Below, one piece after another: positions 5,200 to 45,473 of a stretch of DNA of 53,178 nt (its first letter is position 1; each line of letters begins with the position of its first letter). Below the pieces are notes generated by a model, which did not search any database, was not told where the DNA came from, and saw only the letters and a list, made by a program, of their open reading frames with translations. The DNA comes from Selaginella moellendorffii (lineage: Eukaryota > Plantae > Lycopodiophyta). The stretch lies in the NCBI RefSeq assembly GCF_000143415.4, contig NW_003314465.1:1-53178 (forward strand), written 5' to 3'. The translations under genes and the position numbers were made by a program.

Positions 5200-8100
5200 G
5201 CCCTCAAAGAGTACATGGACGAGAACCTTGCATCGGGGTACATTTAGCATTCGCAATCCCTGGCTGGAGCACCTATCTTCTTTGTCAAGAAGAAGCATGG
5301 GAGTTTGCGGTTAGTCATTGACTACTGAGGTTTGAACAAGGTGACTATTCGGAACCATTATCTTTGGAACGCCTCGGTGGTGTGCACTTCTTCACCAAGA
5401 TTCACCTTTGTGGAGCATACAACTTGATCTAGATCCGGCCTAGCGATGAATGGAAGACTGCATTCTGAACCCGCTATGGCCACTTCGAGTACACGGTCAT
5501 GCCCTTTGGCTTGACAAATGCTCCAGCAGTTTTCCAACATATGGCAAACGACATTTTTCAGGAGTTTCTTGATGTGATGGTGATCGTCTACCTCGACGAC
5601 ATCCTCATCTACTCAAAAACTTAGGAGGAGCACGATGAGCATGTGCGTAAGGTGCTAGTGAAGCTGCGGGAACATGGCCTATATGCAAAGCTTGAGAAAT
5701 GTTCCTTCAATCAGGAGTCTATGGAGTTCCTTGGGTACATTATCACTCCTGAGGGTATCACGATGGATCCTGCCAAAGTCAAGACTATTCTCGAATGGGA
5801 GCCTCCACAATCAATGTCAGACATTCAGGTTTTTCTTGGCTTCACCAACTTTTACCGCAAATTCATTGATCACTACTCCGACATTGTCCTTCCTCTCACG
5901 CATCTCACTTGCAAGGATGTTCCCTTCTTTTGGTTTGCTGCTGCCCAGCAAGCCTTCAACACACTCAAGGTGGCCTTCAGTTTTGCTCCCGTCTTGATCC
6001 ACGCTGATCCCTCACAACCTTTCTTCATCAAGGCAGATGCCTCCGACTTTGCCATCGGTGCTATGCTGTCTCAACTCGGAGCAGATCAGCTCCTTGCCAT
6101 TGTGGATTCCTTTAGAAAGTGGCATCATTTCTTGGAGGGGGCGAGCCATCAAACAATGGTGTAGACGGATCACAAAAATCTGGAGTACTTTGCCACTTCC
6201 CGAGTTTTGAGCCGTCGTCAGGCAAGGTGGGCATAATTCCTGAGTCAGTTTGAATTTGTTATCAAGTACAAACCTAGAAAGCTTTAGGGCCTTCCTGATG
6301 CTCTTTCAAGGCACTCCTATCTCAGTCTCAGGCCTGGTAATCCTGCTTTCGATCAACAGGATCAAGTTATCCTTGGTCCTAATCTTCTTCAAGTTATGGC
6401 AATTTCCCTGGCCCCTCAGGACTCCTCCTTGATGGACGTGATCAGAAATGATCTTCAATCTGACGACCTCGCCAGTGACATTTTCCCCCATCTTTAGGCT
6501 GGACATCCAATGACTCCCGATTGCCGGCGATTTGACAAATTCGAGTTTGTTGTACCGTGGGGAGCAGATTTACATTGCTAAAGGTGATGCTCGAAGGTTG
6601 GTCCTGATGGCATGCCATGATAGCCCAACTGCTGGTCACTTTGGCATTGCGAAAACCTATGAGCTGGTTGCACGGGACTTTTGGTGGCCTCACATGGACA
6701 ATTACATCAAAGCTTTTGTTACTTCTTGTGACACTTGTGCCCGGAATAAGGTACCTTGCCACTTTCCTTTAGGTTTGCTTCATTCCTTCCTGGTCCCTTC
6801 AGGTCCTTGGGAATCCATCTCAATGGATTTCTTGAGTGATCTTCCAAGTTCTGGAAGCTTCAACAACATTTTAGTTGTGGTGGATCACTTCACAAAGATG
6901 GCACACTTCCTGCTGTGTACCAAGGAGCTTTTAGGCGAGGACATGGCAAAACTGGTATTCAAGGAAATTTTCCGACTTCATGGGATTCTTGTAGATGTAG
7001 TTTCGGATCCAGGACCTCAATTCATCTCTCATTTTTGGCAACAGTTCCTGCAGCTTCTTGGAGTGAAGGCCAACCTCTCTTCAGCATATCATCCTTAAAC
7101 TGATGGACAGTCCGAGCGAACGATTTAGACATTGGAACAATTCCTGAGGTGTTTCATCAACTATCATCATAATGACTGGTTCAATATCCTTCCCCTTGCT
7201 GAGTTCTCCTATAACAACTCCATTCACTCCTCCCTTCAAGTTTCCCCCTTCTTTACAAACTCTGGCTGAAATCCCTGATTTAATCTCTCACTTCCTTCTC
7301 TATCCGAATCCTCTCGTTCAAATCCCCGCTTTGAGGCATTTATCTCTAACCTCTAGGAAATCCATAACTCCATCTCCTTCCACCTTCATCGTGCTCAAGA
7401 ATCTCACAAAACACTCACCAATGTCCATCGTCAGGATTGTCCCTTTTACAATATCGGGGATATCCTTAGGTGAAATATCTCCACCACCAGGCTATGTCCC
7501 AAACTCAATTTCAAATGCCTTGGTCCTTTCCTTATCACTGCCATCATTAATCCTGTCATTTATCGCCTTGCACTTCCCTCCTCATATCAAATTCACCCCG
7601 TTTTTCACTCCTCTCTCCTTGAGCCTTACATTCCCAATCCTATTCCAAATCGGGTCATTCCTCCACCTCCCCAGTGCAGCTTGAAGATGGGTCTAAGTAC
7701 AAGGTTCAGGACATCCTTGATTCCAAAATCTCACGGTCTAAACTCTATTATCTGGTAGATTAGAAGGGTTACGAACTTAAGGAATGCACTTGGGAACCTG
7801 CAGACCACTTAATTCATTCTCCTGACCTTATTCATGACTTTCACTGCCACTATCCTTCTCATTTTAGTCCTCATTCTTTTCATTCCCCATCTCCTGTCCC
7901 TCGACGCCCAAGAAGGATCGTAGTCCGGTGACTAAAGCACTATTATATGAGTATGGACTATCTTTTTAAGTTGGAGGCATTAGTGATGTGAGCGGTGCTT
8001 GCTTTCCTTAAGGATATCCTAGTACTCCCTCATCTTGGCTGTGCCATAATTCTCTACCTCAAAAGTACACTTAGCTCAGAAAAGTGAAATCATTTATAAA

Positions 8101-9173
8101 GAGACTATCTAAACTGCTGCGTAACCTTGTGTTATTGTGAAAGTTCTTGCTTCTTCATCATGTTATTTACTTTAATCGGTCTTCAATCTATTCTCGGGCT
8201 TTATGATTCCCATATTCTTGTCTTGCTTGCTCACAACATTGTGTTTTTCCTGCAGAGGATTCCAAGTGTTGGATCTGGTACTATTGGATATGTTTGGCCT
8301 GATCATGTCCTAGTATGGAAACCGTCTATGTGTAAAAGTTTTTGATATTTTCTTTGGAAAAACAAAAGAGTTTGAAACTTTGTGTTTTTTGGGATAAAGT
8401 TTCATACTTATATTAGAGAGTGTCCCAACAAATATTAAAGTCTTCAACTAAAATTATAATATTGAATGCATTTCAATACAAAATTAAGCAAGATATTTAA
8501 TTATTCATCTTTTTCTATAAACAATGCTGGGTATAAACCCATTTAAAATATTTCATAATTTCTTTATATTGTAGGTTATGCTTGATTTAAAGGAGTTTTT
8601 GTAAGTTAATAATTTTTTTTCTAATCTAGATGTAATATAATATAAATAAGGAAGTAAAATTAATATTAGAGTAACTTAAAAATTAATGTTTCTTACATCA
8701 TTATTCATTATATAGCTGTCTCTTGGTCTAGCTGATGTAGCATTCTAATTTCAGTACTATAAGTTTATGATAATAATATTAAATATATTTTCTCTAAATT
8801 ATAAGAAAATATGTCTCTGATATATTTTTTTTCAATTATAGTTAATCACTTGGATCCCTTGGAAATGATGAACTTGAAAAGATTACATAATGGCTAGTTG
8901 TAATATAGAGGGCACAAAATCTAGCTATCTAAGATTGATGGCCTGATAGTTAAACATGAAAGAACTTAAGAGAGTTAAATATTGTTCTAGCTATTTAAAA
9001 ACTAGAAACTAGTGGGGACACCATTCCTTGCCATTTGTCCTGGTGTGCAACAGCTAGCAATTAACATTAATATTCAATGGTATGCAAATGCCTCAATTTA
9101 AACAAATGCCGAGTCTCATTAGTTGTTATTCTTAGCATTCAAGTATGTTAAGAAATATTTTAGAATATACATT

Positions 9174-9348
9174 TGTGAGTGCTTGGAATATGGAAAGGGA
9201 ATACAGAAATGTGCATATCAATTAGCCCAAAAACCCTAGCTTATATACAGGAGCAAATGGTCCAGATTAAAACCAATCCGACGGCTACCAAAATCCCACT
9301 ACGCTAATATTAGTATATGGCATCGTAACCGTACACTTGGCCCTCACA
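9174..9348 (-). repeat. 3' LTR (175 bp)
   Basis: tgtgag..ctcaca; about 10 differences from the 5' LTR, counted by eye. Confidence 0.95.
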
Positions 9349-12300
9349 TCATCCCATCCTCTCGGGATAATGGAAGACCATCAGGGTTCTCTTGAAGATG
9401 GGCCGGGATCTGGAGGAACGTCAGGAGGAGGCATCGGTGGATCTGTAGGTGGTATTAACTCCTCCTGATCCCTTTATACGAAGCGTTTCAGCCGCTGCAC
9501 ATGCACAATCTCTGGAGGATCGGCCTGCTGAACATCATGCCGAACCTCATAAACTTGTGGTCCAACTTGCCGCAACACTCGATACGGTCCTTTCCATTGC
9601 ACAAGAAGCCTCTTAGATAAACCATGTACCATAAGATGGGGAAAACGGACTAACACCAAATCATCCACTTTGTACTCCGCAGGTGGACGATGATGGGAGT
9701 TGTAGCACCATTGTTGTCCCACTTGTACGCGGCCTAAGTGTTCGGCAAACTCTGCTCGAACAAGTGGAAGAATGCTCGTCAAATACTGATCCCATGATCT
9801 AGCATCGGCAGCTCGTGGCAATCGCGAAGGTAAACCCAGCTCCGTTGGTAATATTGGATCATGACCATATAGAAGTTTATATGGTGAAGCACCAACAGAA
9901 CTCTGCACCCCTGTAACATATGCATACCGAAGAGACGGCAAATAACCATCCCAATCCGAATGCTGAAAGTTCACATACTTCGCAATCATCCCTTTGAATG
10001 TCCGAACAAGCCGTTCCACCAAACCGTCTGATTGTGGATGATAAGCACTCGTAAGAGTGTGGCGTATCCCCAACCGAGATGTCAAAACATGAAATATCTC
10101 AGCCATAAATGCGGGACCATTATCTGAAAGAATCTACTCTGGACAAGAATGCTGGAACACCACTCGATTGAGAAGGAAGTATCCAATAGCAGTTGTAGAG
10201 GCACTAGCAAGAGCACCAACTTCCACCCAATGAGTCAAGTAGTCAGAAGCAATAATAACATACTCATTGCCAACAGTCGACCATGGAAAAGGTCCCATAA
10301 GATCAAACGCCACTAACTCAAACAGACGGGAAACCACAATTGACTCCAACCATCCTTCTGTAGCACGAGGGGGAGTATTACGAGCTTGGCACCAAACGTA
10401 GCTACGCACATACCGGATAATATCATGTCGCATCTCCGGCCAATAGAAAGACCTGCGCAGCTTCTCGGTGACACGACGGTGTCCCATATGCCCACCAAGA
10501 ACAGGAGAATCATGGTAGGCATGGAGAAACCGCGGAATAAACACCGAAGGCACCACCAGCCGTAAATGATCATCAGGATCCGTCCCCACAAAATAAAGAA
10601 GGCCATCTTCAAGGCAATATTGAGAATGTAAATGCTGGAAAGGCAAGTTATCAGCAAGTGATGCAGGATTTTCAAACCCATCTCAAAGCCTTCGAATCCA
10701 CGGCTTAATCTTTTGAGCCTCGCGAACCTCATCAAGATAAGGTAGATCTTGCTCTGCGCCCTGTGGACACTGAACGTCAAGGACAGTAACCGCCGACGGC
10801 ACAGAATCCTCATCTAGAAAATCCACAGATGCTGGAATAATAGGTTCATCAGAAACATGAGAAGTGAGTGGAGAAGGAAGAGGAGCTCGAGAAAGGGCAT
10901 CAGCATCAACCATAGAACTCCCTGGGCGATGAACAACATCAAAATCATATATCTGAAGCTTCAAAGCCCATCAAGCCGTATGACCAACCAGGTTCTTCCG
11001 CTTCAATAATGAAGTAACAGTAGCATGGTCACCTTCAAGTAACGTCCGAGAACCATGTAGATATGCATGAAGTTTCTCGAAACCCCAGACTGCTGCTAAA
11101 CACTCCTTCTCCGTCGTGGAGTAGTTCATCTCCGCTGGTTGTAATGTACAGCTTATGTATGCAATGGGATGGCGCTGACTAGGCACACTTGAGCTCTCTT
11201 GCATCAACACACCTCCAAGACCAATGTCAGAAGCATCCACGTGCAAAATAAAAGGTCAAGTGTAGTCAGGATACGCCAAAACCGGAGGAGTCGTCAATAG
11301 CTCTTTGAGATCCACGAACGCCCGCTCACAATCTGAAGACCAGATGAAAGATGACATGGATGACTTCAGCAACGCTCGCAATGGTGTAGTGCGATCGGAA
11401 AGATGATCCACAAAACGACCAAGATACTGCACCTTACCCAAAAAGCGTTGCACATCATTCACACACTTCGGAGTAGGGAACTTTAGAACAGCCACAATTT
11501 TGTCAGGATCAACTTGCAAACCCTCACGAGAAATACGGTACCCAAGATAAGTTGTGTCCTTGGACCCAAACACGTACTTTGACCGCTTCAGCTTTAAACC
11601 AACGTCGTGTAGCCGATCCAACACTTTACAAACATCATGAACGTGCTCCTCCCACGTCCCCTCCGAGTGGATCAAGACATCATCAATGAAGTCAGCAGTC
11701 ACCTCCGGCATATCACAAAGAACCTCGTCCATCATCCATAGGAAAGTTGCTGGAGCATTGTTCAAACCAAACGGCATCACCAAGAACTCATACAAACCAA
11801 ATAGTGTACGAAAAGCAATCTTAGGAATATCTTCTTCAGCCATCGGTACTTGCCAATACCCAGAAGGAAGATCTAGCTTGGTGAACCAACGACTTCACCC
11901 CAGACGATCCAAGAGATCAGCAGTATGTGGAAGAGGATACACATCTGGGATCGTCACTTCGTTTAACAGACGATAGTCGATGCAGAAACGAATACTCCCA
12001 TCAGGCTTCGTCACAAGATGAGGTTCGCCCAAGGACTCTGTGACTTCCGAATAACACCTTTCTCTAGCATTTCCTTGACGTTTGCTCGTAAAATCTTGAT
12101 CTCCTTAGGTGACCAACGACAAACAGGAACCTTGATTGGACGAGCATCCCCAGTTGGAATCGGATGACATGTGGCAATCTTGGCCCCAGACGATAGGTCA
12201 AATTCAAATAGATCAGAATACTCCTTCATGAGCCGGTCAACTGCTGCAACAAAAGATCGTCGGAGGGATCGGAAAAGGGAAAAGCAGAACAAGATGGAAA

Positions 12301-12856
12301 CACAAAAGGAAAGAGTGGGGGAACAAAAGTAATGGAAATAGAGGTAGAAGTAGAGGGACGAAGAGGTATGGAAGTGAGAGGAATGGATGAAACATAAAGA
12401 AGTATAAGACAAGGGGAGAAGCCTCAAAGTCACATTTGGCATGATTGCGCTGCAACCAATCCATACCAAGAATGAGGTCAAAAGCTTGACTTGGCACCAC
12501 CCGCAACGACTACAACTCAAGCTCAAGATCGCTCACACGCACAACTAGGTCCACCTCATCCCGTGCACATGCATGTGTACAGCCGTTGCCATAAAGAATG
12601 AAAAATGGTTCCGCCACATGACGCAAGTGTAGACGACAACGTGTGGCAACAGGTCGAGCAATAGAAGATAAACTCGAACTTATATCAACCAACACGAAGA
12701 GAATAATAGGAGACCTCTGGTTATAAAAACGAACTTGGAAAGTAAACACTGGATGAACTGGTGCCGAGTGAACCCCTTGATGGTACTCCCGAAAGAAAGA
12801 TGGAGGGGTCACTGATTTATTTGCGCAAGGTCCCTCCGTTACTCGCGCGACTCCTC

Positions 12857-12863
12857 GTTTCCC
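12857..12863 (-). promoter_or_regulatory. -1 ribosomal frameshift heptamer G GGA AAC at the gag/pol overlap
   Basis: In phase with gag (ccg gga aac gag gag tcg cgc gag taa); the -1 frame reads GKRGVARV into the protease; a stem begins 6 nt downstream. Confidence 0.75.
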
Positions 12864-14004
12864 GGATGCATCTCGGTGTCCAGACCTTCCACTGCAGCAG
12901 CACCCACGGGATGTTGCTGACGCCAAGGTCTCCACCTAGGAAATGGAGGTCGCCAATCCAGAAAACGACGGCAATGCCGATAAGTATGACCAACTTTATC
13001 ACACACCCAGTAGCGAACATCACGGCCACGACCATGTCCTCGCGCTTGTCCTTGGACTCGAGCAGCAGCAGCATCAACCTCCATTGGAATAGGACCATCA
13101 CTCATAGGAAGTGGAGCGGAAGGACGTGCAGCGAGAAGTGGAAGAGGCGACATCTCATAACGTTGTGCCAAGTGAAGAGCATTGTCAAGGGTGGCAGGAG
13201 CAAGTGCATGCATAAGGCCGACAAGATCTTGACGAAGTGCTGGCCACAACATTCCTAGCTTGATCCGCTCCGACATATTTGGCTCCGCATGAAGCAAAAG
13301 ACTTCGGAAACGAACGCCAAATTGCATCACCGACTCAGATGGCCCTTGGCAAAGACAATGCAATTGTTGGAAAGTATCATCACAATCATCGGCATGTCCG
13401 AAGGCGCGTTTGAAGACGTCCGGGAGAACACTCCAATCCCCACGAGTGGCTGTGCTCAAACCATTGTACTACTGCAACGCCATCCCTTGGAGACACATGG
13501 GAAACTCACGCAACCGTCGAGCATCATACCAAGAATGATATGTGGCAATCACCGTGAAGTGATCGAACCAATGGTACACATCATCCCTAGGATTCCTGCA
13601 AAAGAACTCCGGCCAAACGCGAGGATTGGCACCAAGAGCAGGAGGAGTTGTACCACGTGCCGTGAATGCCGCCATCAACTGAGTTTGGTTGTTCAACTGC
13701 AAGCGCATAGCATCAAGCAATTGTACCAATTGCTACTCTAGAGTCAAAGGAGGAGATTGCTGATTTGCCATGAAGATGAACGAAAAAGAAAGAGCAAAAG
13801 AAGAGAAATGACAAAAAGCTAGAAGGAAATGGTAGATCTAGACAACGCAAAAAGCTAAATCTAAACCAAAACCATGAATAGAAAGAACAAAAGACAGGAA
13901 ATGGAAAAAGCTAGATCTAGACGATGCAAAAGCTAGATCTAAACCAAAATCCCAAATCCAAGCACTCCTTAGGGACAATCAAAGATGCCCCTTACCTCCA
14001 CCAA

Positions 14005-14179
14005 TGTGAGTGCTTAGAATATGGAAAGGGAATACAGAAATGTGCATATCAATTAGCCCAAAAACCCTAGCTTATATACTGGAGCGAGTGGTCCAAATTA
14101 AAACCAATCCGATGGCTACCAAAATCCCACTATGCTAATATTAGTATACGGCATCATAACTGTACACTTGGCCCTCACA
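14005..14179 (-). repeat. 5' LTR (175 bp)
   Basis: tgtgag..ctcaca, adjacent to the PBS. Confidence 0.95.
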
Positions 14180-14277
14180 CATTGTGATATATTTTAGATA
14201 GCACAAAAGAAATTTAAAAAGAGTAGTATATTTTAAATAGCACAACAAATTATTTAAAAAGAGGAGTAGTACTCAAT

Positions 14278-14759
14278 GGAATTTAACAATTGGTTCCTCA
14301 AGGTATGGAAGAAACTAGAAACCTAGACAGATAAAATTGATGGATCAATTCCTCTCTCTCTCTCTCTCTCTCTCTCTTCATTTGTTTCTTTCTTTCTATG
14401 ATTTTGCAGAGTTGTCAAAAAAGGTACTTGGCATTGGCTTTGAGGTTCCCATAGGCAAAAAGAAACTCATTCACTCTGTACCACAACAGAACTTGCAGGG
14501 GTGAGCTTTTAAATGTTCTGAAGCTACTCTCTCTTGTTTTGACTTCCAGGTTCTGTGGATTCGAAAGGCCTGTAGGAAAACGTTTCACAAAGGTGCAGAT
14601 ATTCTCTCTACAAAAATCAACAATCCCGCCATTTTCTTCATCACATCTCCCAAGAATTGGGATAGCTCTCCAGCTTCCACTTGATCTCTGCCCACTTGAG
14701 ATGAGATGCATGGATCCTACAAGAAGCCAGCCGTGGACACCACGCTGTTGCATCTCCCG
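14278..14759 (+). repeat. Long inverted repeat, left arm (core; continues at 9113-9168 and 8901-9005 beyond the gypsy insertion)
   Basis: Reverse complement of 19453-20090. The MQQRGVHGWLLVGSMHL.. ORF appears on opposite strands in the two arms; outer matches include gagggcacaaaatc and ttgttctagctattt. Confidence 0.9.
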
Positions 14760-14880
14760 AGCTATTTTGTTCAAGATGTGTGGTATACCGACGTGAACTA
14801 TAAATTGCAGTGCAGGATCACATTCTAACTGATTTAATGCTAGAAGCAGCTATGATATCTGACAACTCCAAAATGTTGAG

Positions 14881-15600
14881 CCTTCGTGACTTCCAACGCA
14901 AGAAATTAACCAGCTAGGAAACCCAGAGCAGTTATTAAAGAAATACGTTCCATTTCTTTGTGAGGAGTGTCAGCAATCGCAACTAACACTGATACTCTTG
15001 AATTTTTTTTCATCTGTGCATAATTTAGGTTGATTATGTATCTCAGTTCGGTGCTGACCAGTATCTACGTCTGGGGAAACTTCTTGTATTGTGTAGGATC
15101 ATCTCGTTCTTGGACTCCAACATAATAAAATTCCATCGAGAAGAAATACTAATCTTCTCTATTGCAGGTTCGTGATAGTATTTATCTTATTTTCGCAAAA
15201 CTTTCCGGGAAGTTTACTGTTAATTCTCCTTGGGCATACTCCCGATGCTGTTTCTTTTCTTTTGGAAAGCTCAGTGTTTTACTTGTCGTCACTAACACTA
15301 ATACCAGATAGCACTACGCCTGTACAAGTACATAGCCTGAACATCCTAGCATGGTTTATTTCTGAAACTTCTATTTCGGACGAGAAGCAGTTACTGTTGG
15401 CCGTGGTTGGCTGCATTGTAGCTCTTGCAAGCACTTTGAAGGTAAATCTTGATCTCATAATTTAAACCAGTCTTAAATCTTTGTTTGTAGTCTGTGCCAT
15501 GCAGTGCTTTAAAGAAATCAAGCAGGAAGGTCAAGTCTTGAAGCTTTCTGTGCTTTTGCGAGCCATACATGACAATACCAAGAACTTCGTAAACAACAGG
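14881..15600 (+). pseudogene. Host gene fragment, HEAT-repeat-like (possibly UTP10/HEATR1)
   Basis: One frame with several stops: PEQLLKKYVPFLCEECQQSQLTLILLNF..VQVHSLNILAWF..KQLLLAVVGCIVALAS, followed by a GT..AG intron. The resemblance is recalled by eye only. Confidence 0.3.
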
Positions 15601-16014
15601 AGGTTTTTGTCATCCTTTCTTCATACTAGTCTGCTCATCGAATGAGAGCAAGACAATTAGAACATGTGGTACGTTTCATTAAGTTGCACCTCCGCCAACA
15701 ATTTCAATCTTTCTAAGAACTTCAGACATCTCCCACCTTGCTTTGTTGGTTCGATCCAGCTGAAAATTATTGACTTGCCAGAAGGAAAGAAAGCAGAAAA
15801 GAATTCCTTGATTTGTTTCGTTACATGTATACTTCTTTTCTTTCTGGCATGTCACCAGTTTTCTATGTTGGATCAAATCAATAGAGCAAGGCGGCTGTAT
15901 GAAAGATTGAGACCCTCTGCATTAGCTATTGCATCAACAACCCACAGATGTATGGCTAAGGGAGGGATGGAAATGAGTGGGATGACCATAACCTAAACGA
16001 GACGCAGACAAAGT

Positions 16015-16340
16015 TTAATACCTCACAGTCTCAATGGCTGCTTTGCCATCTAGTTTTGAAGCGTAGAACGATTGAAGGTAATTTCCATAGACGCTATCTT
16101 TGAAGCAAGCAGGCGCTTCGTCAGCGACCAGCTGCGCCAGCAGAGCAATGTGACTATCTTCTGCTGGCCCATAGAATGAAGCAATGGAGACCATAGAATG
16201 AAGCAATGGAGCAATGAGGGTGGCGGCCAGGCGGCGGTGCAAGAGCTTCCCTCGCGGGAGGGAGTTGGAATCACCACATTGGCGCAGAAGAGTCGCGATT
16301 TGGCGTGGAGATGCCTGCAGGAGGCACCGCGATCACTCCT
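16015..16340 (-). pseudogene. Chimeric fragment beginning with a PPR (PLS-class) N-terminal motif
   Basis: IATLLRQCGDSNSLPRGKLLHRRL; no in-frame ATG; joined to unrelated sequence at a 21-bp tandem duplication (16169-16211). Confidence 0.55.
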
Positions 16341-16798
16341 CTTGCTACTTCGCTGGATGTCATGGCAAAGACACACTCTCTCTCTCCATGATCCTGTGAA
16401 GAGCTTCATATGGATCATCACATTTTTTGTCAATAGCTTCACATAGGCACTAAACAACAGACATAAAGGAACTCAGAAGCAATCAGTCTTCTAAGCATCT
16501 TATCCTCCGGCATCAAATGTTGGATCAGTGATGTCCTTTTTGAAGTCTCGCTTGTTGTTTGAGGTGGGCACGTGCTCCTATTGGTGTTCATGGGGTGTTG
16601 CAAAGCTGTGGGCTCTCAATGTAAAGGGGATTTCCTTGGCAAAAGAGCTTGAAATTTTGGTGTGCTGTTTTTCTTGTTTTACCATTTTGTTTTACATGAG
16701 ACATGTAGGAAATCCTGAGCTCAAAAGTTCACTAAGATTTATTCGCATAAACTACACTTTGGCAGAAAAATTATAACATTTACTACAAAATACAATAA

Positions 16799-17386
16799 TC
16801 AGTTAAAAACAACCCATTCATCATCGAATGGATCTAGGACGTACAATTTGCCTTGCTTCTCCACACATTGTCCAATATTCCAGCGATGGGTAACTTTGGT
16901 AAAATCCACACACTTTGACAGCGCAAGAAGGAACGGGGTTACATCTGCCAAGAAGTGGTCATCCTTTGACCCCTCAAACTTTGGAGCCACCACCACGCTC
17001 TCTTGATGACCTTGGTAGAAGTCAATAATGTCATCCAGTGCCACCACCCGCTTGAAATCCCGAAACCCTACATGGTCAAGATTCTTGACTTTCGTCCCGT
17101 CCTTTAGAACAACGCAATTGCCACCATGTAGCCTCCTCGACACAAGCCCCCCAGTAGGATCCAGATGGTCAACCACAAGGTTGACATACTTCTCCTGGGC
17201 GGCACTAAACACCACGATATCGTACACTTTTGAAACCTTCCCCAGAAATTCATCTACGCCTGGTCTCTTCATGATGTGGAGTGGTGCATCATCGTCGAAT
17301 TCCATGCTGAAACTCACAGAAGAGACGAGATCCTTATGAGCGTATACCAGTGTATTGTCTAGATCAAGAATGAGTGTCTTCTTCAT
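16799..17386 (-). CDS. FCP1/SCP (NIF-domain) HAD-family protein phosphatase, 195 aa, single coding exon
   Basis: KKTLILDLDNTLV (DxDxT nucleophile motif), KRPGVDEFL, DIVVFSAA, LDP, VKNL, VVALDD, KFEGSKDD.L; ORF is intact. Confidence 0.93.
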   Translation of the reverse strand: MKKTLILDLDNTLVYAHKDLVSSVSFSMEFDDDAPLHIMKRPGVDEFLGKVSKVYDIVVFSAAQEKYVNLVVDHLDPTGGLVSRRLHGGNCVVLKDGTKVKNLDHVGFRDFKRVVALDDIIDFYQGHQESVVVAPKFEGSKDDHFLADVTPFLLALSKCVDFTKVTHRWNIGQCVEKQGKLYVLDPFDDEWVVFN

Positions 17387-17812
17387 GATACCCTAAAAAA
17401 TGACTCGTATTCCGTGGAAATGTAGAAGGGCCACAAAAGGTGACCAAAGGTGCCACGTCTGCCCTAAACTCTATCCGACGTGGCCTTTTTGTATTCTTGT
17501 ACCCTACTATTGGCAAAGCCCAAGGGAGCCGGAGGAGCGCGTCGATCCTCAATGCAGCTTAGATTCCAAATCTAGGGCTGCCGTGATCGTCTGGCAAGGG
17601 CAGAGGTGAGTGCGCTGCTGGTTTGCGGCCTACTGTTGGCGAGGCGGAAGGAGGTGAGCATGCAATTGTAGCAAGTTTGTTGTGAATCCATTGACGGACA
17701 GCTGATGTGCGCATTCTAGGCTCCAGCCGTTGGATAAGTGCAGTAACGACTCCTCAATCTCTTTTGTGCTTTCAGCAACGACTCACAATGTTAACACTGA
17801 CCAGAGTCCACC
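17387..17812. promoter_or_regulatory. Compact bidirectional promoter / 5' UTR region
   Basis: 426 bp between divergent ATGs; inverted ACGTGGC (ABRE/G-box-like) pair at 17452-17459 and 17477-17484; site-II AGCCCA at 17517-17522; likely 5'-UTR introns on both strands (acceptors at 17775+ and ~17393-). Confidence 0.55.
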
Positions 17813-19171
17813 ATGGAGAGGAAGAGAGCTGCTGGTCCGAAGAAACTACACACTCAGAAGCGATCCGACGTCATGCTCGAAAGGACCCGCCCACTGGATC
17901 CGATTAACCGAGCTCGATCAGGTTGGTCAAAACTTGAAACATCTGCACTTGTCTGACGAAGATCCTCGTTGAAGCAGGAGCAGGAGAAACTGATCATGAT
18001 GCATCCGCGTTGCAGGCTGCTCCTGACGCTGGTACGAAGAATTCCTTTTGTTGGCTGACACGACTCTTTGCTGGTTTGATTCATGACTTGCAGAATATGT
18101 TCGGCAATTCCTCGCAATGGCGCAACGCTTGGAGAGATTCAAGATGCTCTCGGCGAATGTTGTGAGCGGGATCGTGGAATCGATCCAAAAGGGAGGGGAC
18201 ACTCCAGTTGCAGCAGCAGGTGGATACAATAATTTCTCTCTTTGGCATCTTTTCGCTTCTGAGTGGCCCCTTGTCTCTCTTGTCCAGGCCGCTTCTGCAG
18301 CAGCTACGAAGTGCTCGCTTGTGTTGGCCAGGGGGCGTCCGGGAAAGTATACAAGTGCCGTAGCAAGGAGGACGAACAAATCTACGCCATCAAAGTCATC
18401 AAGGTTCGCACAGCAACGAAGTCCAGAGACCAGGATGTCGCGCTCGTCTTCAAGGAGGGAGAGATGCTCCAGCGCTGCGAACACCCCAACATAGTCAAAT
18501 ACTTCGACATGTGGAAGGAGGAAGGCGAGCCGGGCAAGTCGAAAGTGTACATTGTCATGGAGTTTTGTGGCCGCTCGCTCCAGTCGGTGCTCCTCGGCGG
18601 TGAGTCACCACCTGCAGATGCGTTTAGGCAGCTTCTTCAAGCTGTGGCGCATGTGCACGACAACGTGGGTGTTCATCGGGATATAGCACCACACAACATC
18701 TTCGTCACAGACGATGGACGCATCAAGCTGGGAGATTTCGGTCTTGGTAGGCAAATGAAACATCTCTTCCATCTCTCATTTGTTGGCTTACAGCTAAAAA
18801 TAAGGAGTCCATGCTCGAGACCGAAAATATCAAGAAGGGGAGAGCAGTTTACTACTCTCCCCAGCGCCGGAGCAACTCAACCTACACTGACATGCTTGCG
18901 CTTGGAGTTATACTCTTCGAACTTCATTGGAGGTGTCCCCCGGACCAGGTTTGGCTGCAGTTTGTGCAACGTGCTTGCTTAGTTTGGTGAATCTGTGTAG
19001 GAAAGGGAGTCGGTATTGATTGACGTCCGGGATGGCGTTTTACCAGCAGACTGGGCGTACCAACACCCATCAATTGCGCCCAAGGTGTTGGAGCTGGTCG
19101 CAGCAAGACGCGACCAGCGTCCATCCGCGCGCGACATCCTCTGCGATCCTGCCTGGCAATCTGTTTGGTGA
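17813..19171 (+). CDS. Stand-alone GCN2/eIF2-alpha-kinase-like Ser/Thr kinase, 6 exons, 357 aa
   Basis: Exons 17813-17921, 17978-18031, 18094-18219, 18288-18746, 18794-18948, 19001-19171. All introns are GT..AG (47-68 bp) and phase-consistent; start context ccaccATGG. Motifs VGQGASGKV, YAIK, KEGEML, IVKYFDMWKE, YIVMEFC, HRDIAPHNIF, IKLGDFGLAK, YYSPQ, DMLALGVILFEL, ERESVLIDV, RPSARDIL. The first two exons are less certain than the kinase core. Confidence 0.85.
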
Positions 19172-19452
19172 GTTTCTTTCATTACTCTGATTCTCTGCTT
19201 GGCTTCTAACATGTCTGTTTGCAGCTGATCGTTGTAGTTGTTTAGATTTACTTGCTCCTTTTTGTCATCTTTGTAGTCTTGGTCTTTTTCAGCATGCTGA
19301 TTTCGATTCAGAAATATGAATTCGTTGCCAGTTCATTGCATTTCTGCCAGGCCGAGTTGTTCTCGATCACGGTTGCTGAACAACTCAAGGGCTTCCGACA
19401 TTCTTGTAGTCAGGTTCGGTTCAAGGAACAGGATTGGTAAACAGCACATTGA

Positions 19453-20090
19453 CGGGAGATGCAACAGCGTGGTGTCCACGGCTGGCTTCTTGTAGGGTCC
19501 ATGCATCTCACCTCAAGTGGGCAGAGATCGAGTGGAAGCTGGAGAGCTATCCCAATTCTCGGGAGATGCGATGAAGAAAATGGCGGGATTGTTGATTTTT
19601 GTAGAGAGAATATTCGCACCTTTGACCTGTTGACCTTTTTACAGGGAAACGTTTTCCTACAGGCCTTTCTGAATTGAATCCAAGGAACCTGGAAGTCAAA
19701 ACAAGAGAGTAGCTTCAGAACACTCAAAAGCTCACCCCTGCAAGTTCTGTTGTGGTACAGGGTGAATGAGTTCCCCTTTTTTGACGAGTCTGCAAAATTA
19801 TAGAAAGGATGAGTCAAATGGAGAGAGAGAAATATATATATATATATATATGAATTGATCCAGGTTTGTTTTTTTCATACCTTGAGGAACCAATCGTTCA
19901 ATTCTACTGATTTCTTTGCATACTTGAATGCAAAGAATAACAAATAATGAAGCTAGGTGCTTGGTTAGATTGAGGCAAGTTTTCAAATAGCTAGAACAAT
20001 CTTTAGCTCTTTTAAGTTGTTTAGTGTTTAACCATCATGACATCAATCTTAAAACATGTCCAGAAGTTGGATTTTGTGCCCTCTAGATTA
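19453..20090 (-). repeat. Long inverted repeat, right arm
   Basis: Reverse complement of 14278-14759 plus 9113-9168 and 8901-9005. Confidence 0.9.
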
Positions 20091-20250
20091 ATGATGTTAA
20101 TTTTAGACTCTTTGTCAGTGTTAATCCTTGTAATTTATAGGATAATATAGAGTTTCTCAGTTTTATATTGTTTTTCAAATTTTACTTGATACTCTTCCAG
20201 TTCTAGATATGAGGCAAAATAAAGAACTTCATAGTTTTTATATGAAAATT

Positions 20251-22114
20251 TTAAAGTTTCAAATCATTATGACCGCCATCTTCAGTCTCCTCGCCATTGG
20301 CACCAACAGTGTTGACATTCTCATGGCCATCATCTTTGTCATTCGGCATGTCTTCATTGTTGCCTCTTGTAGCCTCTTGGTGGGTTGGTGTATAATCTGG
20401 CATCTCTAATTCCCAAGGACAAGCTTGCTTTATTGCCACTGGAAACTTCATTGTTGTCGGGTACATGCCTCCATCTCTCACACCATGCCTCAGGAGTCGT
20501 GTGCATACCGGTGTTTCGAGAGGAACACCTCTATATTAGAGATACCTATAATAGAATATAAACAAATTGAGTATAGTTGAGAAATTGTATGTTACCTAAA
20601 AGCCGCTCGACGCATGAAATAAAGTTGGCCAAGTTGTTTATCAAATGGAGTCGTGCTTGTGGCCTTCTTTGGCAGCCAGTCCTCTCCGAGTTTTATAAGC
20701 TTAGTGGTGATGAAGTCCTTGAATGGAAATTGCTCAAGATCATCCCCTATAAAAGGTGCTAGACACAGCTGTTATAAAAGCCATTGGATTCTTGTACCAT
20801 CTATTGGCATCTTGACGACCTCGATGATGCCGAATAAGTAATGCTAAATCATCACCATAATGGCTGCAGACTGCATCCTCGTTGAGATTAGCAAGAAACC
20901 AGATTTGCTCAATATCATGTACTAGGCTTCGTTTCTGCACTACAAATTATCCTAACTTGCAAAACACAAATTGTTAAAAGTGATTGAAGAGGGAGTGGTA
21001 CCTATGCATTAATTTTGTGGCAAGCTATCACAAGCTTTGCCACATCTAGAGATCCTCTCGTATGTACATGTCCAACCGGAACATTGATGTGATAGATAGG
21101 ATTGTCTCGGAAGCATTCATTGATGCACTTTATCTACGCACACCAGCGATGATTCCCGTCGATAATGTAGAACATTTTCCCCACAAATTGTTGAGTCTCA
21201 AGATGGCTCATAAGCATGTTGTAAAATTTGCGGGACTTCATTTTCCAAATGTCATCCCAAACCCTCTCGATTTCTGGTGACACCGAGAGGGTATTTGTCG
21301 TTCCTGGCTTGAAGACCCAAACAAGGAACATACCTATGTTTGTCCCAAGGCCATTATGTTTGTACAGACTATAGATGTTCATGTTGATGAAGTGTGGTGA
21401 AGCAGACCGAATGATGCTTGTCTGAGTGAATAGACATAATGGGATTTCTCGGATTATGTCTCCCGGGCCTTCCCACTTGAGAAACTCTAGAGTCGTGTGA
21501 ATGGCCTTTTCTTTGGTTCTCAAAACTGTCTCTTGGAAGCACTTGTCTACAATGTGTTTAAGTAACTCCACTTCTCTTTCAGATTCAGCTACACCTCCAG
21601 TAGCACCATTATCAGATCTAGCCCTCAGCTTGGGCCTAACACCCCCGTCAGGCGCACTTGGGCACTACTTTGTAATGTAGTTAGTTTCTGCCATATTTTG
21701 TGAATATGTTAAGAGTAGTGGCATTTGTGGTTGTGGCTGCAATGGTAGTGACGACAATCGCGCTGCTGGTGGTGATGATGGTGGTGGTAGTGGTGGTAAT
21801 AATGGCGATGATGGCATTGGTGGTAATGGTGGTGATGACGGTGGTGGTAATGGTGGTGATGAAGGTAGAGGTGGCAATGGTGGTGGCAGTGGTAATGGTG
21901 GTGGTGGTAGTGGTAATGGTGGTGGTGGTATCGATGGTGGTGGTGGCAAAAATGGGGGTGCATGTGGACTAGAGCTATCTGGTTGTGAAGACGGCAGAGT
22001 TGTCGCTATGGAAATCTCTATCTAAAGGTCAACTTGATTGTCGTCTTGGATCTCATCTTCCTCATGTCTTCTCTTTGATCCAACATCCTTCTCCTTTTGT
22101 AATTGCTTTCGTTT
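20251..22114 (-). pseudogene. Multi-exon ParB/Srx-motif protein with poly-Pro linker, decayed (probable transposon accessory gene)
   Basis: FVGKMFYIIDGNHRWCA motif; (CCA)n poly-Pro at 21770-21945; GT..AG introns; premature stops near 22022, 21665 and 21134 (the last two are Q and W in copy B); internal deletion at ~20767. Confidence 0.6.
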
Positions 22115-22149
22115 CTGAAAATAATATAAATTAAAAATGCATAAGAAGC

Positions 22150-22690
22150 GAGGACTTTGGGGCGTGGACTTGGCGTAGGAGCCGGTTCGCTGGCGAACTA
22201 GCCCTCCTCCCAATGCCAAGTCCAAGTGCCCTGGCTGGGCATTTGGCGCGGGCCGATTCGCTGGCAAACCGGCCCTCCTCCCAGCCCCAAGTCCAACTGC
22301 CTAGGTCAGGCACTTGACGTGGGCCGGCCAAGGTGCTTGGGGGAGGGCCGGTTCGCCAGCGAACTGGCCCGCCCCCAAGCGCCTTGGCCGGCCTGCCCCC
22401 AAGTGCCTTTGCCGGCCCCGCGCAGAGTGCCTGGCCTGGGCACTTGGCACAGGCACTTGGCACGGGTGCCGATTCGCTGGTGTACCAATGGCCTGCCCGG
22501 GCGGAGTGCCGGGCCAAATGCCCGGCCTGGGCACTTGGCAGCGGTGGTGCTGGGCAGCGGTGGCCCTGGGCAGTGGCAGCCCTGGGCAGTGGCGGCGCTG
22601 GGCATGGCATGGCGTGGGCGCGGCAGCACTGGGCATGGCGGTGATGGGCAGCGGCAGCCCTAGGTAGTGGCGGCACTGGACGTGGTGTGG
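22150..22690. repeat. GC-rich complex repeat with internal direct and inverted units
   Basis: Recurrent gccggttcgc..gcgaact, ccaagtgcc/ggcacttgg and ctgggcagtggc units; lies between a gtaagt donor (22713-) and a ttttcag acceptor (22115-). Confidence 0.7.
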
Positions 22691-33258: not shown

Positions 33259-36200
33259 TGTGAGTGCTTGGAATATGGAAAGGGAATACAGAAATGTGCA
33301 TATCAATTAGCCCATAAACCCTAGCCTATATACAGGAGCAAGTGGTCCAGATTAAAACCAATCCGACGGCTACCAAAATCCCACTACACTAATATCAGTA
33401 TATGGCATCGTAACCGTACACTTTGCCCTCACATCATCCCATCCTCTCGGGATAATGGAAGACCATCAGGGTTCTCTTGAAGATGGGCCGGGAGCTGGAG
33501 GAACGTCAGGAGGAGGCATCAGTGGATCTGTAGGTGGTATTAACTCCTCCTGATCCCTTTGTACGAAGCGTTTCAGCCGCTGCACATGCACAATCTCTGG
33601 AGGATCGGCCTGCTGAACGTCATGCCGAACCTCATAAACTTGTGGTCCAACTTGCCACAACACCCGATATGGTCCTTTCCATTGCGCAAGAAGCCTCTTA
33701 GATAAACCATGTACCGTAAGATGGGGAAAACGGACTAACACCAAATCATCCACTTTGTACTCCGCAGGTGGACGATGATGGAAGTTATAGCGCCGTTGTT
33801 GTCCCACTTGTACGCGGCCTAAGTGTTCGGCAGACTCTGCTCGAACAAGTGGAAGAATGCTCGTCAAATACTGATCCCATGATCTAGCATCGGCAGCTCG
33901 TGGCAATCGCAAAGGTAAACCCAGCTCCATTGGTAATATTGGATCATGACCATATAGAAGTTTATATGGTGAAGCACCAACATAACTTTGCACCCCTGTA
34001 ACATATGCATACCGAAGAGACGGCAAATAACCATCCCAATCCAAATGCTGAAAGTTCACATACTTCACAATCATCCCTTTGAATGTCCGAACAAGCCGTT
34101 CCACCAGACTGTCTGATTGTGGATGATAAGCACTCGTAAAAGTGTGGCGTATCCCCAACCGAGATGTCAAAACATGAAATACCTCAGCCATAAATGCGGG
34201 ACCATTATCCAAAAGAATCCGCTCTGGACAAGAATGCTGGAACACCACTCGATTGAGGAGGAAGTATCCAACAGCAGTTGCAGAGGCGCTAGCAAGAGCA
34301 CCAACTTCCACCCAACAAGTCAAGTAGTCAGAAGCAATAATAATATACTCATTGCCAGCAGTTGACCATGGAAAAGGTCCCATAAGATCAAACGCCACTA
34401 ACTCAAACAGACGGGAAACCACAATTGACTCCAACCATCCTTCTGCAGCACGAGGGGGAGTATTACGAGCTTGGCACCAAACGTAGCTACGCACATACAG
34501 GATAATATCACGTCGCATCTCCGGCCAATAGAAAGACCTGCGCAGCTTCTCGGTGACACGACGGTGTCCCATATGCCCACCAAGAACANNNNNNNNNNNN
34601 NNNNNNNNNNNNNNNNNNNNNNNNNNNNNNNNNNNNNNNNNNNNNNNNNNNNNNNNNNNNNNNNNNNNNNNNNNNNNNNNNNNNNNNNNNNNNNNNNNNN
34701 NNNNNNNNNNNNNNNNNNNNNNNNNNNNNNNNNNNNNNNNNCGTCAAGGACAGCAACCGCCGACGGCACAGAATCCTCATCTAGAAAATCCACAGGTGCT
34801 GGAACAACAGGTTCGTCAGAAACATGAGAAGTGAGTGGAAAAGGAAGAGGAGCTCGAGAAAGGGCATCAGCATCAACCATAGAACTCCCTGGGCGATGAA
34901 CAACATCAAAATCATATATCTGAAGCTTCAAAGCCCATCAAGCCGTACGACCAACCAGGTTTTTCTGCTTTAATAATGAAGTAACAGTAGCATGGTCACC
35001 TTCAAGTAACGTTCGAGAACCATGTAGATATGCATGAAGTTTCTCGAAACCCCAGACTGCTGCTAAACACTCCTTCTCCGTCATGGAGTAGTTCATCTCC
35101 GCTGGTTGTAATGTACAGCTTATATATGCAATGGGATGGTGCTGACCAGACACACTTGAGCTCTCTTGCATCAACACACCTCCAAGACCAATGTCAGAAG
35201 CATCCACGTGCAAAATAAAAGGTCAAGTGTAGTCAGGATACGCCAAAACCGGAGGAGTTGTCAATAGCTCTTTGAGATCCACGAACGCCCGCTCACAATC
35301 CGAAGACCAGATGAAAGATGACGTGGATGACTTCAGCAACGCTCGCAATGGTGTAGTGTGATCAAAAAGATGATCCACAAAACGACCAAGATACTGCACC
35401 TTATCCAAAAAGCGTTGCACATCATTCACACACTTCGGAGTAGGGAACTTTAGAACAGCCACAATTTTGTCAGGATCAACTTGCAAACCCTCACGAGAAA
35501 TACGGTACCCAAGATAAGTTGTGTCCTTGGACCCAAACATATACTTTGACCGCTTCAGCTTTAAACCAACGTCGTGTAACTGATCCAACACTTTACAAAC
35601 ATCACGAACGTGCTCCTCCCACGTCCCCTCCGAGTGGATCAAGACATCATCAATGAAGTCAGAAGTCACCTCTGGCATATCGCAAAGAACCTCGTCCATC
35701 ATCCATTGGAAAGTTGCTGGAGCATTGTTCAAACCAAACGGCATCACCAAGAACTCATACAAACCAAATGGTGTACGAAAAGCAATCTTAGGAATATCTT
35801 CTTCAGCCATCGGTACTTGCCAATACCCAGAAGGAAGATCTAGCTTGGTGAACCAACGACTTCGCCCCAGACGATCCAAGAGATCAGCAGTATGTGGAAG
35901 AGGATACACATCTGGGATCGTCACTTCGTTTAACGGACGATAGTCGATGTAGAAACGAATACTCCCATCAGGCTTCGTCACAAGATGAGGTTCACATGCC
36001 CAAGGACTCCGCGACTTCCGAATAACACCCTTCTCCAGCATTTCCTTGACATTTGCTCGTAAAATCTTGATCTCCTTAGGTGACCGACGACAAACAGGAA
36101 CCTTGATTGGACGAGCATCCCCGGTTGGAATCGGATGACATGTGGCAATCTTGGCCCCAGACGATAGGTCAAATTCAAATAGATCAGAATACTCCTTCAT

Positions 36201-38150
36201 GAGCCGGTCAACTGCTGCAACAAAAGATCGTCGGAGGGATCGGAAAAGGGAAAAGCAGAACAAGATGGAAACACAAAAGGAAAGAGTGGGGGAACAAAAG
36301 TAATGGAAGCAGAGGTAGAAGTAGAGGGACGAAGAGGTATGGAAGTGAGAGGAATGGATGAAACATAAGGAAGTATAAGACAAGGGGAGAAGCCTCAAAG
36401 TCACACTTGGCATGATTGCGCTGCAACCAATCCATACCAAGAATGAGGTCAAAAGCTTGATTTGGCACCACCCGCAACGACTGCAACTCAAGCTCAAGAT
36501 CGCTCACACGCACAACCAGGTCCACCTCATCCCGTGCACATGCATGTGTACGGCCGTTGCCATAAAGAATGAAAACTGGTTCTGCCGCACGACGCAAGTG
36601 TAGACGACAACGTGTGGCAACAGGTCGAGCAATAGAAGATAAACGCGAACCTGTATCAACCAACACGGAGAGAATAATAGGAGACCTCTTGTTATAAAAA
36701 CGAACTTGGAAAGTAAACACTGGATGAACTGGTGCCGAGTGAACCCCTTGATGATACTCCCGAAAGAAAGATGGAGGGGTCACTGATTTATTCGCGCAAG
36801 GTCCCTCTGTTACTCGCGCGACTCCTCGTTTCCCGGATGCATCTCGGTGTCCAGACCTTCCACTGCAGCAGCACCCATGGGATGTTGCTGACGCCAAGGT
36901 CTCCACCTAGGAAATGGAGGTCGCCAATCCGGAAAATGACGGCAACGCCGATAAGTATGACCAACTTCATCACACGCCTAGCAGTGAACATCACGGCCAC
37001 GACCATGTCCTCGCTCTTGTCCTTGCACTCGAGCAACAGCAGCATCAACCTCCATTGGAACAGGACCATCACTCATAGGAAGTGGAGCGGAAGGACGTGC
37101 AGCGAGAAGTGGAAGAGGCGACGTCTCATAACGTTGTGCCAAGCGAAGTGCATCGTCAAGGGTGGCAGGAGCAAGTGCATGCATAAGGCCGACAAGATCT
37201 TGATGAAGTGCTGGCCACAACATTCCTAGCTTGATCCGCTCCAACATATTTGGCTCCGCATGAAGCAAAAGACTTCGGAAACGAACGCCAAATTGCATCA
37301 CCGACTTAGATGGCCCTTGGCGAAGATAATGCAATTGTTGGAAAGCATCATCACAATCATTGGTATGTCCGAAGGCGCATTTGAAGACGTACGGGAGAAC
37401 ACTCCAATCCCCACGAGTAGCTGCGCTCAAACCATTGTACCACTGCAACACCGTCCCTTGGAGACACATGGGAAACTCACGCAACCGTCGAGCATCATCC
37501 CAAGAATGATATGTGGCAATCACCGTGAAGTGATCGAACCAATGGTACACATCATCCCCAGGATTCCCGCGAAAGAACTCCGGCCGAACGCGAGGATTGG
37601 CACCAAGAGCAGGAGGAGTTGTACCATGTGCCGTGAATGCCGCCATCAACTGAGTTTGGTTGTTCAATTACAAGCGCATAGCATCAAGCAATTGTACCAA
37701 TTGCTGCTCTAGAGTCAAATGAGGAAATTGCTGATTTGCCATGAAGATGAACGAAAAAGAAAGAGCAAAAGAAGAGAAATGACAAAAAGCTAGAAGGAAA
37801 TGGTAGATCTAAATAACGCAAAAAGCTAAATCTAAACCAAAACCCTGAATAGAAAGAACAAAAGACAGGAAATGGAAAAAACTAGATTTAGACGATGCAA
37901 AAGCTAGATCTAAACCAAAATCCCAAATCCAAGCACTCATTAGGGACAATCAAAGATGCCCCTTACCTCCACCAATGTGAGTGCTTAGAATATGGAAAGG
38001 GAATACAGAAATGTGCATATCAATTAGCCCAAAAACCCTAGCTTATATACTGGAGCGAGTGGTCCAAATTAAAACCAATCCGATGGCTACCAAAATCCCA
38101 CTATGCTAATATTAGTATACGGCATCATAACTGTACACTTGGCCCTCACA
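33259..38150 (-). mobile_element. Full-length gypsy element, copy B (LTRs 33259-33433 and 37976-38150)
   Basis: Same TSD catt/catt, PBS, PPT and domains as copy A; longer RT (35223-36497) and integrase (33466-34572) ORFs; N gap at 34589-34741. Confidence 0.95.
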
Positions 38151-38249
38151 CATTGTGATATATTTTAGATAGCACAAAAGAAATTTAAAAAGAGGAGTAG
38201 TATATTTTAAATAGCACAACAAATTATTTAAAAAGAGGAGTAGTACTCA

Positions 38250-38731
38250 ATGGAATTTAACAATTGGTTCCTCAAGGTTTGGAAGAAACTAGAAACCTAG
38301 ACAGATAAAATTGATGGATCAATTCCTCTCTCTCTCTCTCTCTCTCTCTCTTCATTTGTTTCTTTCTTTCTATGATTTTGCAGAGTTGTCAAAAAAGGTA
38401 CTTGGCATTGGCTTTGAGGTTCCCATAGGCAAAAAGAAACTCATTCACTCTGTACCACAACAGAACTTGCAGGGGTGAGCTTTTAAATGTTCTGAAGCTA
38501 CTCTCTTGTTTTGACTTCCAGGTTCCGTGGATTCGAAAGGCCTGTAGGAAAACGTTTCACAAAGGTGCAGATATTCTCTCTACAAAAATCAACAATCCCA
38601 CCATTTTCTTCATCACATCTCCCGAGAATTGGGATAGCTCTCCAGCTTCCACTTGATCTCTGCCCACTTGAGATGAGATGCATGGATCCTACAAGAAGCC
38701 AGCCGTGGACACCACGCTGTTGCATCTCCCG
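38250..38731 (+). repeat. Inverted repeat left arm, copy B
   Basis: Reverse complement of 43425-43875. Confidence 0.9.

Positions 38732-45437: not shown

Positions 45438-45473
<36 letters not shown>

Follow-up and report, generated by a model that had tools for sequence, protein, structure and literature searches.

A head-to-head pair of an expressed eIF2-alpha-kinase-like gene and a nearly silent SCP-type phosphatase gene in duplicated DNA of Selaginella moellendorffii

In animals the phosphorylated form of eIF2-alpha is reset by GADD34/CReP-PP1, which opposes the eIF2-alpha kinases; PP1 is an enzyme of the PPP family that is brought in by a scaffold, and its gene is not linked to that of the kinase. 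We have analyzed a stretch of 53,178 nucleotides of the lycophyte Selaginella moellendorffii (contig NW_003314465.1, scaffold GL377769.1 in GenBank; from here on, the window) in which a gene for a small kinase of the eIF2-alpha kinase family is found head-to-head with a gene for a small phosphatase with a NIF domain. The original prediction for this locus had proposed a kinase and an opposing phosphatase co-expressed from one promoter, acting as a mobile phospho-switch or as a selfish poison/antidote pair. We favor, with a probability of roughly 0.6, a different reading: a functional gene of the eIF2-alpha kinase family, expressed and lineage-specific, which segmental duplication has multiplied along with an SCP-type phosphatase gene whose linkage to it is historical and which is nearly silent and drifting. 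The kinase family is already annotated but unstudied, and lineage-specific: RefSeq names the kinase 'eukaryotic translation initiation factor 2-alpha kinase-like isoform X1' (P0005, XP_024523577.1, and others) and the phosphatase 'probable phosphatase PSR2', and a full-text literature search gave no paper on either gene.

The two genes are intact and divergent, with start codons exactly 426 bp apart (17387-17812), as had been described before, and the 2373-bp module is found again at 40771-43143, with only 4 differences between the two, which bears out the joint duplication of the pair. The features of both copies are the following.

16799-17386, minus strand: SCP-type NIF phosphatase open reading frame (ORF), copy 1; intronless, 195 amino acids, open throughout, Pfam NIF
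Phosphatase residues 8-12: DLDNT motif, by alignment to the catalytic positions of SCP1
17387-17486, no strand: gap of ~100-145 bp from the ATG of the phosphatase to where the kinase transcripts start (17487-17530); contigs begin at 17487 and read ends pile up at 17518-17530
17487-17812, plus strand: kinase 5' untranslated region (5'UTR), exons 17487-17653, 17720-17742 and 17805-17812; read junctions 17653/17720, 17742/17805 and 17737/17805
17813-19228, plus strand: kinase coding region, copy 1; 358 amino acids, 7 coding exons, introns of 47-68 bp
17813-17921, 17975-18031, 18094-18219, 18288-18746, plus strand: kinase coding exons 1-4, from RNA-seq junctions and P0005
18794-18948, 19001-19167, 19225-19228, plus strand: kinase coding exons 5-7, from RNA-seq junctions and P0005
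40771-41358, minus strand: phosphatase ORF, copy 2; intact, 195 amino acids
41785-43200, plus strand: kinase coding region, copy 2; intact, encoding the variant P0400

The spliced kinase model of 358 residues is identical to the RefSeq model P0005, and its reading frame is intact only after splicing. There are eight spliceosomal introns in total, six coding and two in the 5'UTR. The sixth coding intron (19168-19224) is removed in most kinase transcripts (~55 reads are spliced across it in the data set X21), which places the stop at 19226-19228 and makes the last codon Cys. The module end first given at 19171 is a true stop of the unspliced read-through form, while the main transcript is spliced on to 19226-19228. 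This intron splits the last codon, and the spliced (...QSVC) and unspliced (...QSVW) products are both of 358 amino acids. The 5'UTR contains a micro-exon of 23 nt (17720-17742), for which a donor at 17737 is used as an alternative, and an upstream ORF of 7 codons (MQLRFQI). Positions 13500-21000 of the window match GL377769.1 at 100%, in unchanged coordinates. Phosphatase and kinase are the only genes annotated in GenBank between 7.8 and 29.2 kb of the scaffold. The ORFs flanking the pair are pieces of Ty3/gypsy gag, protease, reverse transcriptase and integrase, and in a Pfam scan the ORFs of 14.4-16.5 kb and of 19.4-19.8 kb gave no match, including those in the stretch at 14.9-16.2 kb that is homologous to a 2-oxoglutarate (2OG) oxygenase.

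Pfam identifies a single domain in the kinase (Pkinase, residues 104-350, 1.9e-41); residues 1-100 had no match, and no RWD, pseudokinase, HisRS-like, dsRNA-binding or luminal domain was detected in the 358 residues. A phmmer comparison with the PDB was led by HRI (1.1e-29), PERK (6.5e-28) and GCN2 (2.6e-26), and with a two-sequence profile (the kinase and a Selaginella paralogue) the first 19 chains were all eIF2-alpha kinases, with bit scores of 170.7 for GCN2, 163.9 for HRI, 155.6 for PERK and 126.6 for PKR, followed by NEK1 with 122.1. The C-lobe alone (residues 283-358, the alphaF-alphaI segment with its alphaG region, ER..L.DVRDG..P) matched only PERK (1.8e-4) and HRI (3.1e-4) among all PDB chains. 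In PKR, this alphaG region of the C-lobe is the docking surface for eIF2-alpha. For the fold search we used an alignment-based AlphaFold2 (AF2) model (predicted local distance difference test, pLDDT, 89.4; predicted TM-score, pTM, 0.88), single-sequence AF2 of the whole kinase having given a pLDDT of 40. Foldseek with the alignment-based model placed GCN2, PERK and PKR at ranks 1-45 (E down to 1.8e-19, TM 0.75-0.83) and the first NEK2 at rank 46. Profile, C-lobe and predicted fold point to the same family, and the assignment as eIF2-alpha-kinase-like is well supported, in agreement with the earlier description of a GCN2-like stand-alone kinase lacking RWD and HisRS-like domains. The descent from plant GCN2 specifically is plausible, the profile and fold rankings being unable to tell GCN2 from HRI or PERK.

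The kinase retains GxGxxG, the beta3 Lys133, the alphaC Glu, the HRD Asp229, Asn234 and DFG. Two core residues have been replaced: the catalytic loop reads HRDIAPHN where HRDxKPxN is canonical (Lys to Ala), and SPQ is found in the place of APE (Glu to Gln). Both residues are kept in 54 of 56 aligned relatives, and the only two proteins that miss them are from Selaginella. As one of these, a paralogue with 40% identity to the window kinase, has the two losses as well, they must be ancient and conserved rather than the result of recent decay. From the retained Lys, Glu, HRD Asp, Asn and DFG together with the alphaG region, we infer that the kinase may bind ATP and dock eIF2-alpha or a similar substrate. 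Its catalysis is probably altered, given that the ancestor shared by the two Selaginella paralogue families had already replaced the Lys of the catalytic loop and the Glu of APE. That it phosphorylates eIF2-alpha itself is conceivable, with odds that we put a little under even.

The RNA evidence comes from four data sets of three studies, two of stranded RNA-seq (X21 and X22) and two with transcript assembly (X1 and X3). The kinase is covered from the plus strand at a depth of 60-250 in X21 and X22, all six coding and both 5'UTR introns are backed by tens to hundreds of spliced reads, and the kinase contig of X3 has a depth of 380. Phosphatase reads were zero in X21, X22 and X3, while the kinase was at depth 60-380. 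The only phosphatase transcript found is one contig of 339 nt in X1, with a depth of 3.8 (kinase 9.3), and its allele is that of a different copy (L005 type). At 18200, ~8% of the kinase reads have the window-type allele, the majority of kinase reads deriving from the commoner copies of P0398 type. With the kinase well covered and the phosphatase without reads, the two genes are not co-expressed in the sampled runs, and the idea of a single promoter driving both is not supported, the kinase being at depth 60-250 and the phosphatase at 0 reads in the same stranded runs. Transcripts of the phosphatase half of the pair are none or almost none, and the kinase half is well expressed.

By looking up the exact kinase protein sequences, we identified at least 13 kinase loci on 9 scaffolds, and in 13 out of 13 a NIF gene is found head-to-head at the same spacing; the only diverged kinase paralogue is also linked to a NIF gene, although in tandem. 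The reference holds two haplotypes, and the copy number per haploid genome is therefore lower. The NIF ORF is intact in 10 of these 13 copies. In the other three, all beside intact kinases, it is disrupted, by a frameshift in L011 and L014 and by a split of ~5 kb after residue 86 in L018. Constraint was measured over the 13 copies, the two window copies differing only once per gene, which gives no power for dN/dS. Segregating sites amounted to 3.5% in the NIF 3' flank, 3.23% in the NIF coding sequence, 4.2% in the intergenic region plus 5'UTR, 0.56% in the kinase coding sequence, 1.2% in the kinase introns and 3.2% in the kinase 3' flank. The ratio of non-synonymous to synonymous polymorphism (pN/pS) was 0.15 for the kinase (2 non-synonymous and 4 synonymous changes), both amino-acid changes falling in the N-terminal extension. 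For the NIF gene it was 0.49 (12 non-synonymous and 7 synonymous), a value that by a rough binomial estimate is not significantly below 1, so the phosphatase half evolves in a manner indistinguishable from neutrality. This and the near absence of its transcripts are two of the outcomes that the original prediction had named as refuting it.

Amplification of an expressed kinase could also be read as defence. An eIF2-alpha kinase of PKR type, independent of GCN2 and multiplied either for dosage or in the course of an arms race, would shut off translation, and the phosphatase would be a bystander. The family assignment and the at least 13 near-identical expressed copies would fit. However, the protein is a Pkinase domain with no sensor domain detected, the changes among copies are of a purifying and not of a diversifying type, and the loss of the catalytic-loop Lys and the APE Glu leaves eIF2-alpha kinase activity only putative. 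We regard a defence role as quite unlikely.

The phosphatase has a single Pfam domain in its 195 residues (NIF, E 1.6e-36), and its best PDB relatives are SCP1/CTDSP1 (1.3e-19) and CTDNEP1. The residues aligning to the SCP1 catalytic positions are all present (DLDNT 8-12, the motif II Ser in FSA, the motif III Lys101 and the motif IV Asp118-Asp119). Pfam found no BRCT domain in the 195 residues, and for this reason the protein is of SCP type and not of FCP1 type; of the 'FCP1/SCP phosphatase' first proposed, the DxDxT NIF domain and the SCP half stand, and the FCP1 half does not. A complex prediction for the kinase domain and the phosphatase scored 0.00, which counts neither way. In the NIF copies of the window scaffold, L004 and L018, three substituted bases at 17313-17315 turn Asp25 into Ser. 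This Asp is kept in all other NIF paralogues and aligns with an Asp in SCP1, and the sole NIF transcript contig (X1) carries the Asp25 allele. Besides, a second and degenerate NIF pseudogene lies ~2-2.5 kb downstream of the kinase in L010 (9295-9787), likewise in L011, L013 and L014, and at different coordinates in L012; in L010, L011 and L014 it has ~74% protein identity and a stop codon. The 5.9-kb segment that carries this pseudogene together with a PPR gene is missing from the window.

We have searched for older relatives of the pair. A HMMER search of 1.84 billion representatives gave one closer relative of the kinase, P0129/P0275 on GL377674.1, with 40% identity over residues 50-350 (E 1.3e-48), all other matches having 37% or less. 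The best 150 matches were mostly unnamed multi-kinase or metagenomic proteins, and the Protein Atlas gave nothing more specific than clusters of generic 'protein kinase' type. P0275 shares with the window kinase HRDIAPxN and the lost APE Glu, and a NIF gene of 213 amino acids, lying on the same strand, precedes it by 643 bp; another NIF copy is found 12.9 kb further along. As the diverged kinase paralogue is also NIF-linked, the kinase-NIF neighbourhood is old and has outlasted a change of orientation. In the NIF tree the minimal NIF proteins of Selaginella form one clade with weak support (75/71) and two well-supported subclades, each with one kinase-linked member and members without a kinase within 10 kb. 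Four NIF paralogue loci are of the latter kind (P0004, P0394, P0380 and P0003), and NIF genes have thus freely duplicated away from the kinase neighbourhood.

P0275 itself has 635 amino acids (L007:10001-12471), with an N-terminal Fumble/pantothenate-kinase-like (PanK-like) domain (2.6e-63) followed by Pkinase (1.5e-42). The L007 NIF genes are at 8726-9358 and 21603-22244, in a tandemly repeated NIF-kinase unit with a further copy at the scaffold end (L006). We considered the N-terminus of the window kinase as a relic of the PanK-like tail and rejected it (BLASTP E = 11). An origin from giant viruses (nucleocytoplasmic large DNA viruses, NCLDV) was also rejected: no NIF relative was found in the IMG/VR viral contigs, and the kinase has eight introns. 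The NCLDV-like genes reported in Selaginella include no kinase or phosphatase (Maumus et al., 2014; PMC4083422).

The age of this neighbourhood bears on the reading of the pair as a conditional writer and eraser. Kinase and phosphatase would share a substrate, eIF2-alpha or other, and the phosphatase would be induced under conditions outside those sampled to reset the phosphorylation. Adjacency at two anciently diverged loci, the placement of both kinase-linked NIFs in one Selaginella-specific clade (weakly, 75/71), the intact NIF catalytic motifs, the pN/pS of 0.49, the low-depth contig in X1 and a kinase transcription start only ~100-145 bp from the NIF ATG are all consistent with it. Nevertheless, NIF reads are absent where the kinase reaches depth 60-380, 3 of the 13 copies combine a broken NIF with an intact kinase, the NIF coding sequence is as variable as the flanking non-coding DNA, and no kinase lies within 10 kb of four further NIF paralogue loci. 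We consider this reading unlikely. A more elaborate version, which we hold to be improbable, would see in lycophytes a second, GCN2-independent branch of eIF2-alpha type, with a minimal kinase of rewired catalytic loop and an ancestral SCP-type phosphatase that resets the same site under unsampled conditions.

The inverted repeats that were said to bracket the pair are real and longer than first described, with arms of ~0.6-0.85 kb and 83-96% identity.

14183-14759, no strand: left inverted-repeat arm, inner part, parted from the outer part 8901-9173 by a gypsy insertion
9174-14182, minus strand: Ty3/gypsy long terminal repeat (LTR) retrotransposon in the left arm, ~5 kb, with 179-bp LTRs
19453-20090, no strand: right inverted-repeat arm

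What had been taken for an adjoining transposase is the integrase of this Ty3/gypsy element. A Pfam scan of the ORFs between the arms found no transposase, the one recombinase nearby being that same integrase in the left arm. No target-site duplication was found at the repeat ends, where the outer flanks GTTGTAATA / GATTAATGA differ. Actually, homology from copy to copy passes both arms, e.g., 8000-9178 and 20090-24000 in L017, L018 and L020. At the paralogous locus L001 (GL377684.1) the left-arm sequence is present once, adjoining a 2OG-oxygenase gene, and there is no kinase and a degenerate NIF copy in inverted orientation. Since the left arm stands alone there, the inverted repeat resembles a local inverted duplication. 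The repeat copies are segmental duplications with local inversions and transposable element (TE) insertions, not products of cassette transposition. Among the repeat copies the gypsy insertion is polymorphic; its site is empty in L013 and L017, and in copy 2 it has a counterpart at 33259-38153.

These observations weigh heavily against the selfish poison/antidote module or transposon-borne phospho-switch. Its appeal came from many copies in TE-rich DNA, from repeats of ~0.6 kb flanking the pair and from divergent genes with very close starts. However, the supposed mobile unit has neither target-site duplication nor transposase, the duplicated segment reaches well past the repeats, and the solitary left arm at L001 gives the repeat the look of a local inverted duplication. 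As a poison with its antidote the pair fares no better, with a highly expressed kinase beside a silent phosphatase that varies like non-coding DNA and is disrupted in 3 of the 13 copies, all three with an intact kinase. We judge this explanation, in either form, very improbable.

Both modules of the window are contained in a tandem duplication of ~20 kb (10775-20767 versus 34742-44733, 98.4%, plus further blocks). The tandem copies differ by 0.27% in the block of 14.3-19.8 kb and by 3.2% in the gypsy flank (~10x). The gypsy differences, 99 transitions and 13 transversions, suggest methylation-driven TE mutation. Hypermutation of the TE is sufficient for the contrast, because the boundary falls at the edge of the TE and its changes are strongly biased toward transitions, and gene conversion may also underlie the low divergence of the 14.3-19.8 kb block. 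As the scaffold is small and the tandem copies are 98% identical, part of the apparent duplication in the window could be a mis-joining of haplotypes. There are assembly gaps (runs of N) at 1877-1977, 34589-34741 and 50841-51152. At 44983-45556 we found an array of a 12-bp unit, GTCCGAGATGGA, with ~36 copies and with 35 and 93 as higher-order periods, next to 24 copies of a second unit, GAGACC, of 6 bp; these arrays give long spurious ORFs at 44725-45837.

In the reading that we prefer, a host gene pair would be carried in a recently amplified segmental duplication of ~20-25 kb in a TE-rich part of the genome. The kinase would be the functional gene, a stand-alone catalytic domain with an N-terminal extension of ~100 residues, transcribed, spliced and near-invariant among copies. 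The phosphatase, with catalytic motifs intact but essentially untranscribed, under relaxed constraint and broken in some copies, would owe its position to an older kinase-NIF neighbourhood and not to a currently required partnership. Several points weigh against this. Retrieval by exact kinase sequence biases the non-synonymous variation of the kinase downward, and truncated kinase models (75-295 amino acids) also exist, so that the constraint on the kinase is somewhat overstated. The low variation of the kinase introns could derive from gene conversion rather than selection. Of the 13 copies, 10 retain an intact NIF in which every catalytic motif is present, and the pN/pS of NIF is below 1, if not significantly. 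The RNA sampling is that of four data sets and three studies, with which a conditional induction of the phosphatase would be compatible. Finally, kinase and NIF have stayed adjacent through long divergence and a switch of orientation, which hints that they are tied in function.

The data describe a land plant with an expressed, multi-copy, stand-alone kinase of the eIF2-alpha family that has lost two near-universal core residues and has one paralogue fused to a PanK-like domain. If the kinase phosphorylates eIF2-alpha, translational control in plants would have a further, new input; otherwise the kinase would be an example of an eIF2-alpha kinase scaffold that has been repurposed. Should the GCN2-independent branch be true, it would amount to a gene-linked regulatory pair of kinase and phosphatase that predates the separation of the two Selaginella paralogue families and has been conserved from then on. 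The linkage to the phosphatase is an evolutionary curiosity, and the poison-antidote and mobile-switch readings can be set aside.

Compared with known systems, the window pair resembles a terminal inverted repeat (TIR) DNA transposon or a Pack-MULE-like cargo element in its flanking inverted repeats, and differs in the lack of target-site duplication, transposase and repeat-bounded copies. GADD34/CReP-PP1, a dedicated phosphatase opposing an eIF2-alpha kinase, is the model for the writer and eraser; unlike it, the candidate here is a gene-linked NIF enzyme of the HAD family, for which opposition is putative and co-expression was not seen. With SCP1/CTDSP1, CTDNEP1/Dullard and the plant SSP-type NIF proteins the phosphatase shares the NIF domain and all catalytic motifs, although it is a minimal, intronless protein of 195 amino acids in a fast-evolving Selaginella-specific clade, almost untranscribed and with relaxed constraint. 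GCN2/EIF2AK4, PERK, HRI and PKR rank first by kinase-domain profile and predicted fold. In contrast to them the window kinase has 358 amino acids, no regulatory domain (in comparison with GCN2 proper, no RWD, pseudokinase or HisRS-like domain), no long N-lobe insert, Ala for the catalytic-loop Lys, Gln for the APE Glu, at least 13 copies and a putative substrate. The PanK-like/eIF2-alpha-kinase-like fusion P0275 differs by its PanK-like domain and by a NIF gene placed in tandem and not head-to-head, whose product is only 38% identical to the window NIF; it is the nearest relative of the window kinase, and a NIF gene adjoins both.

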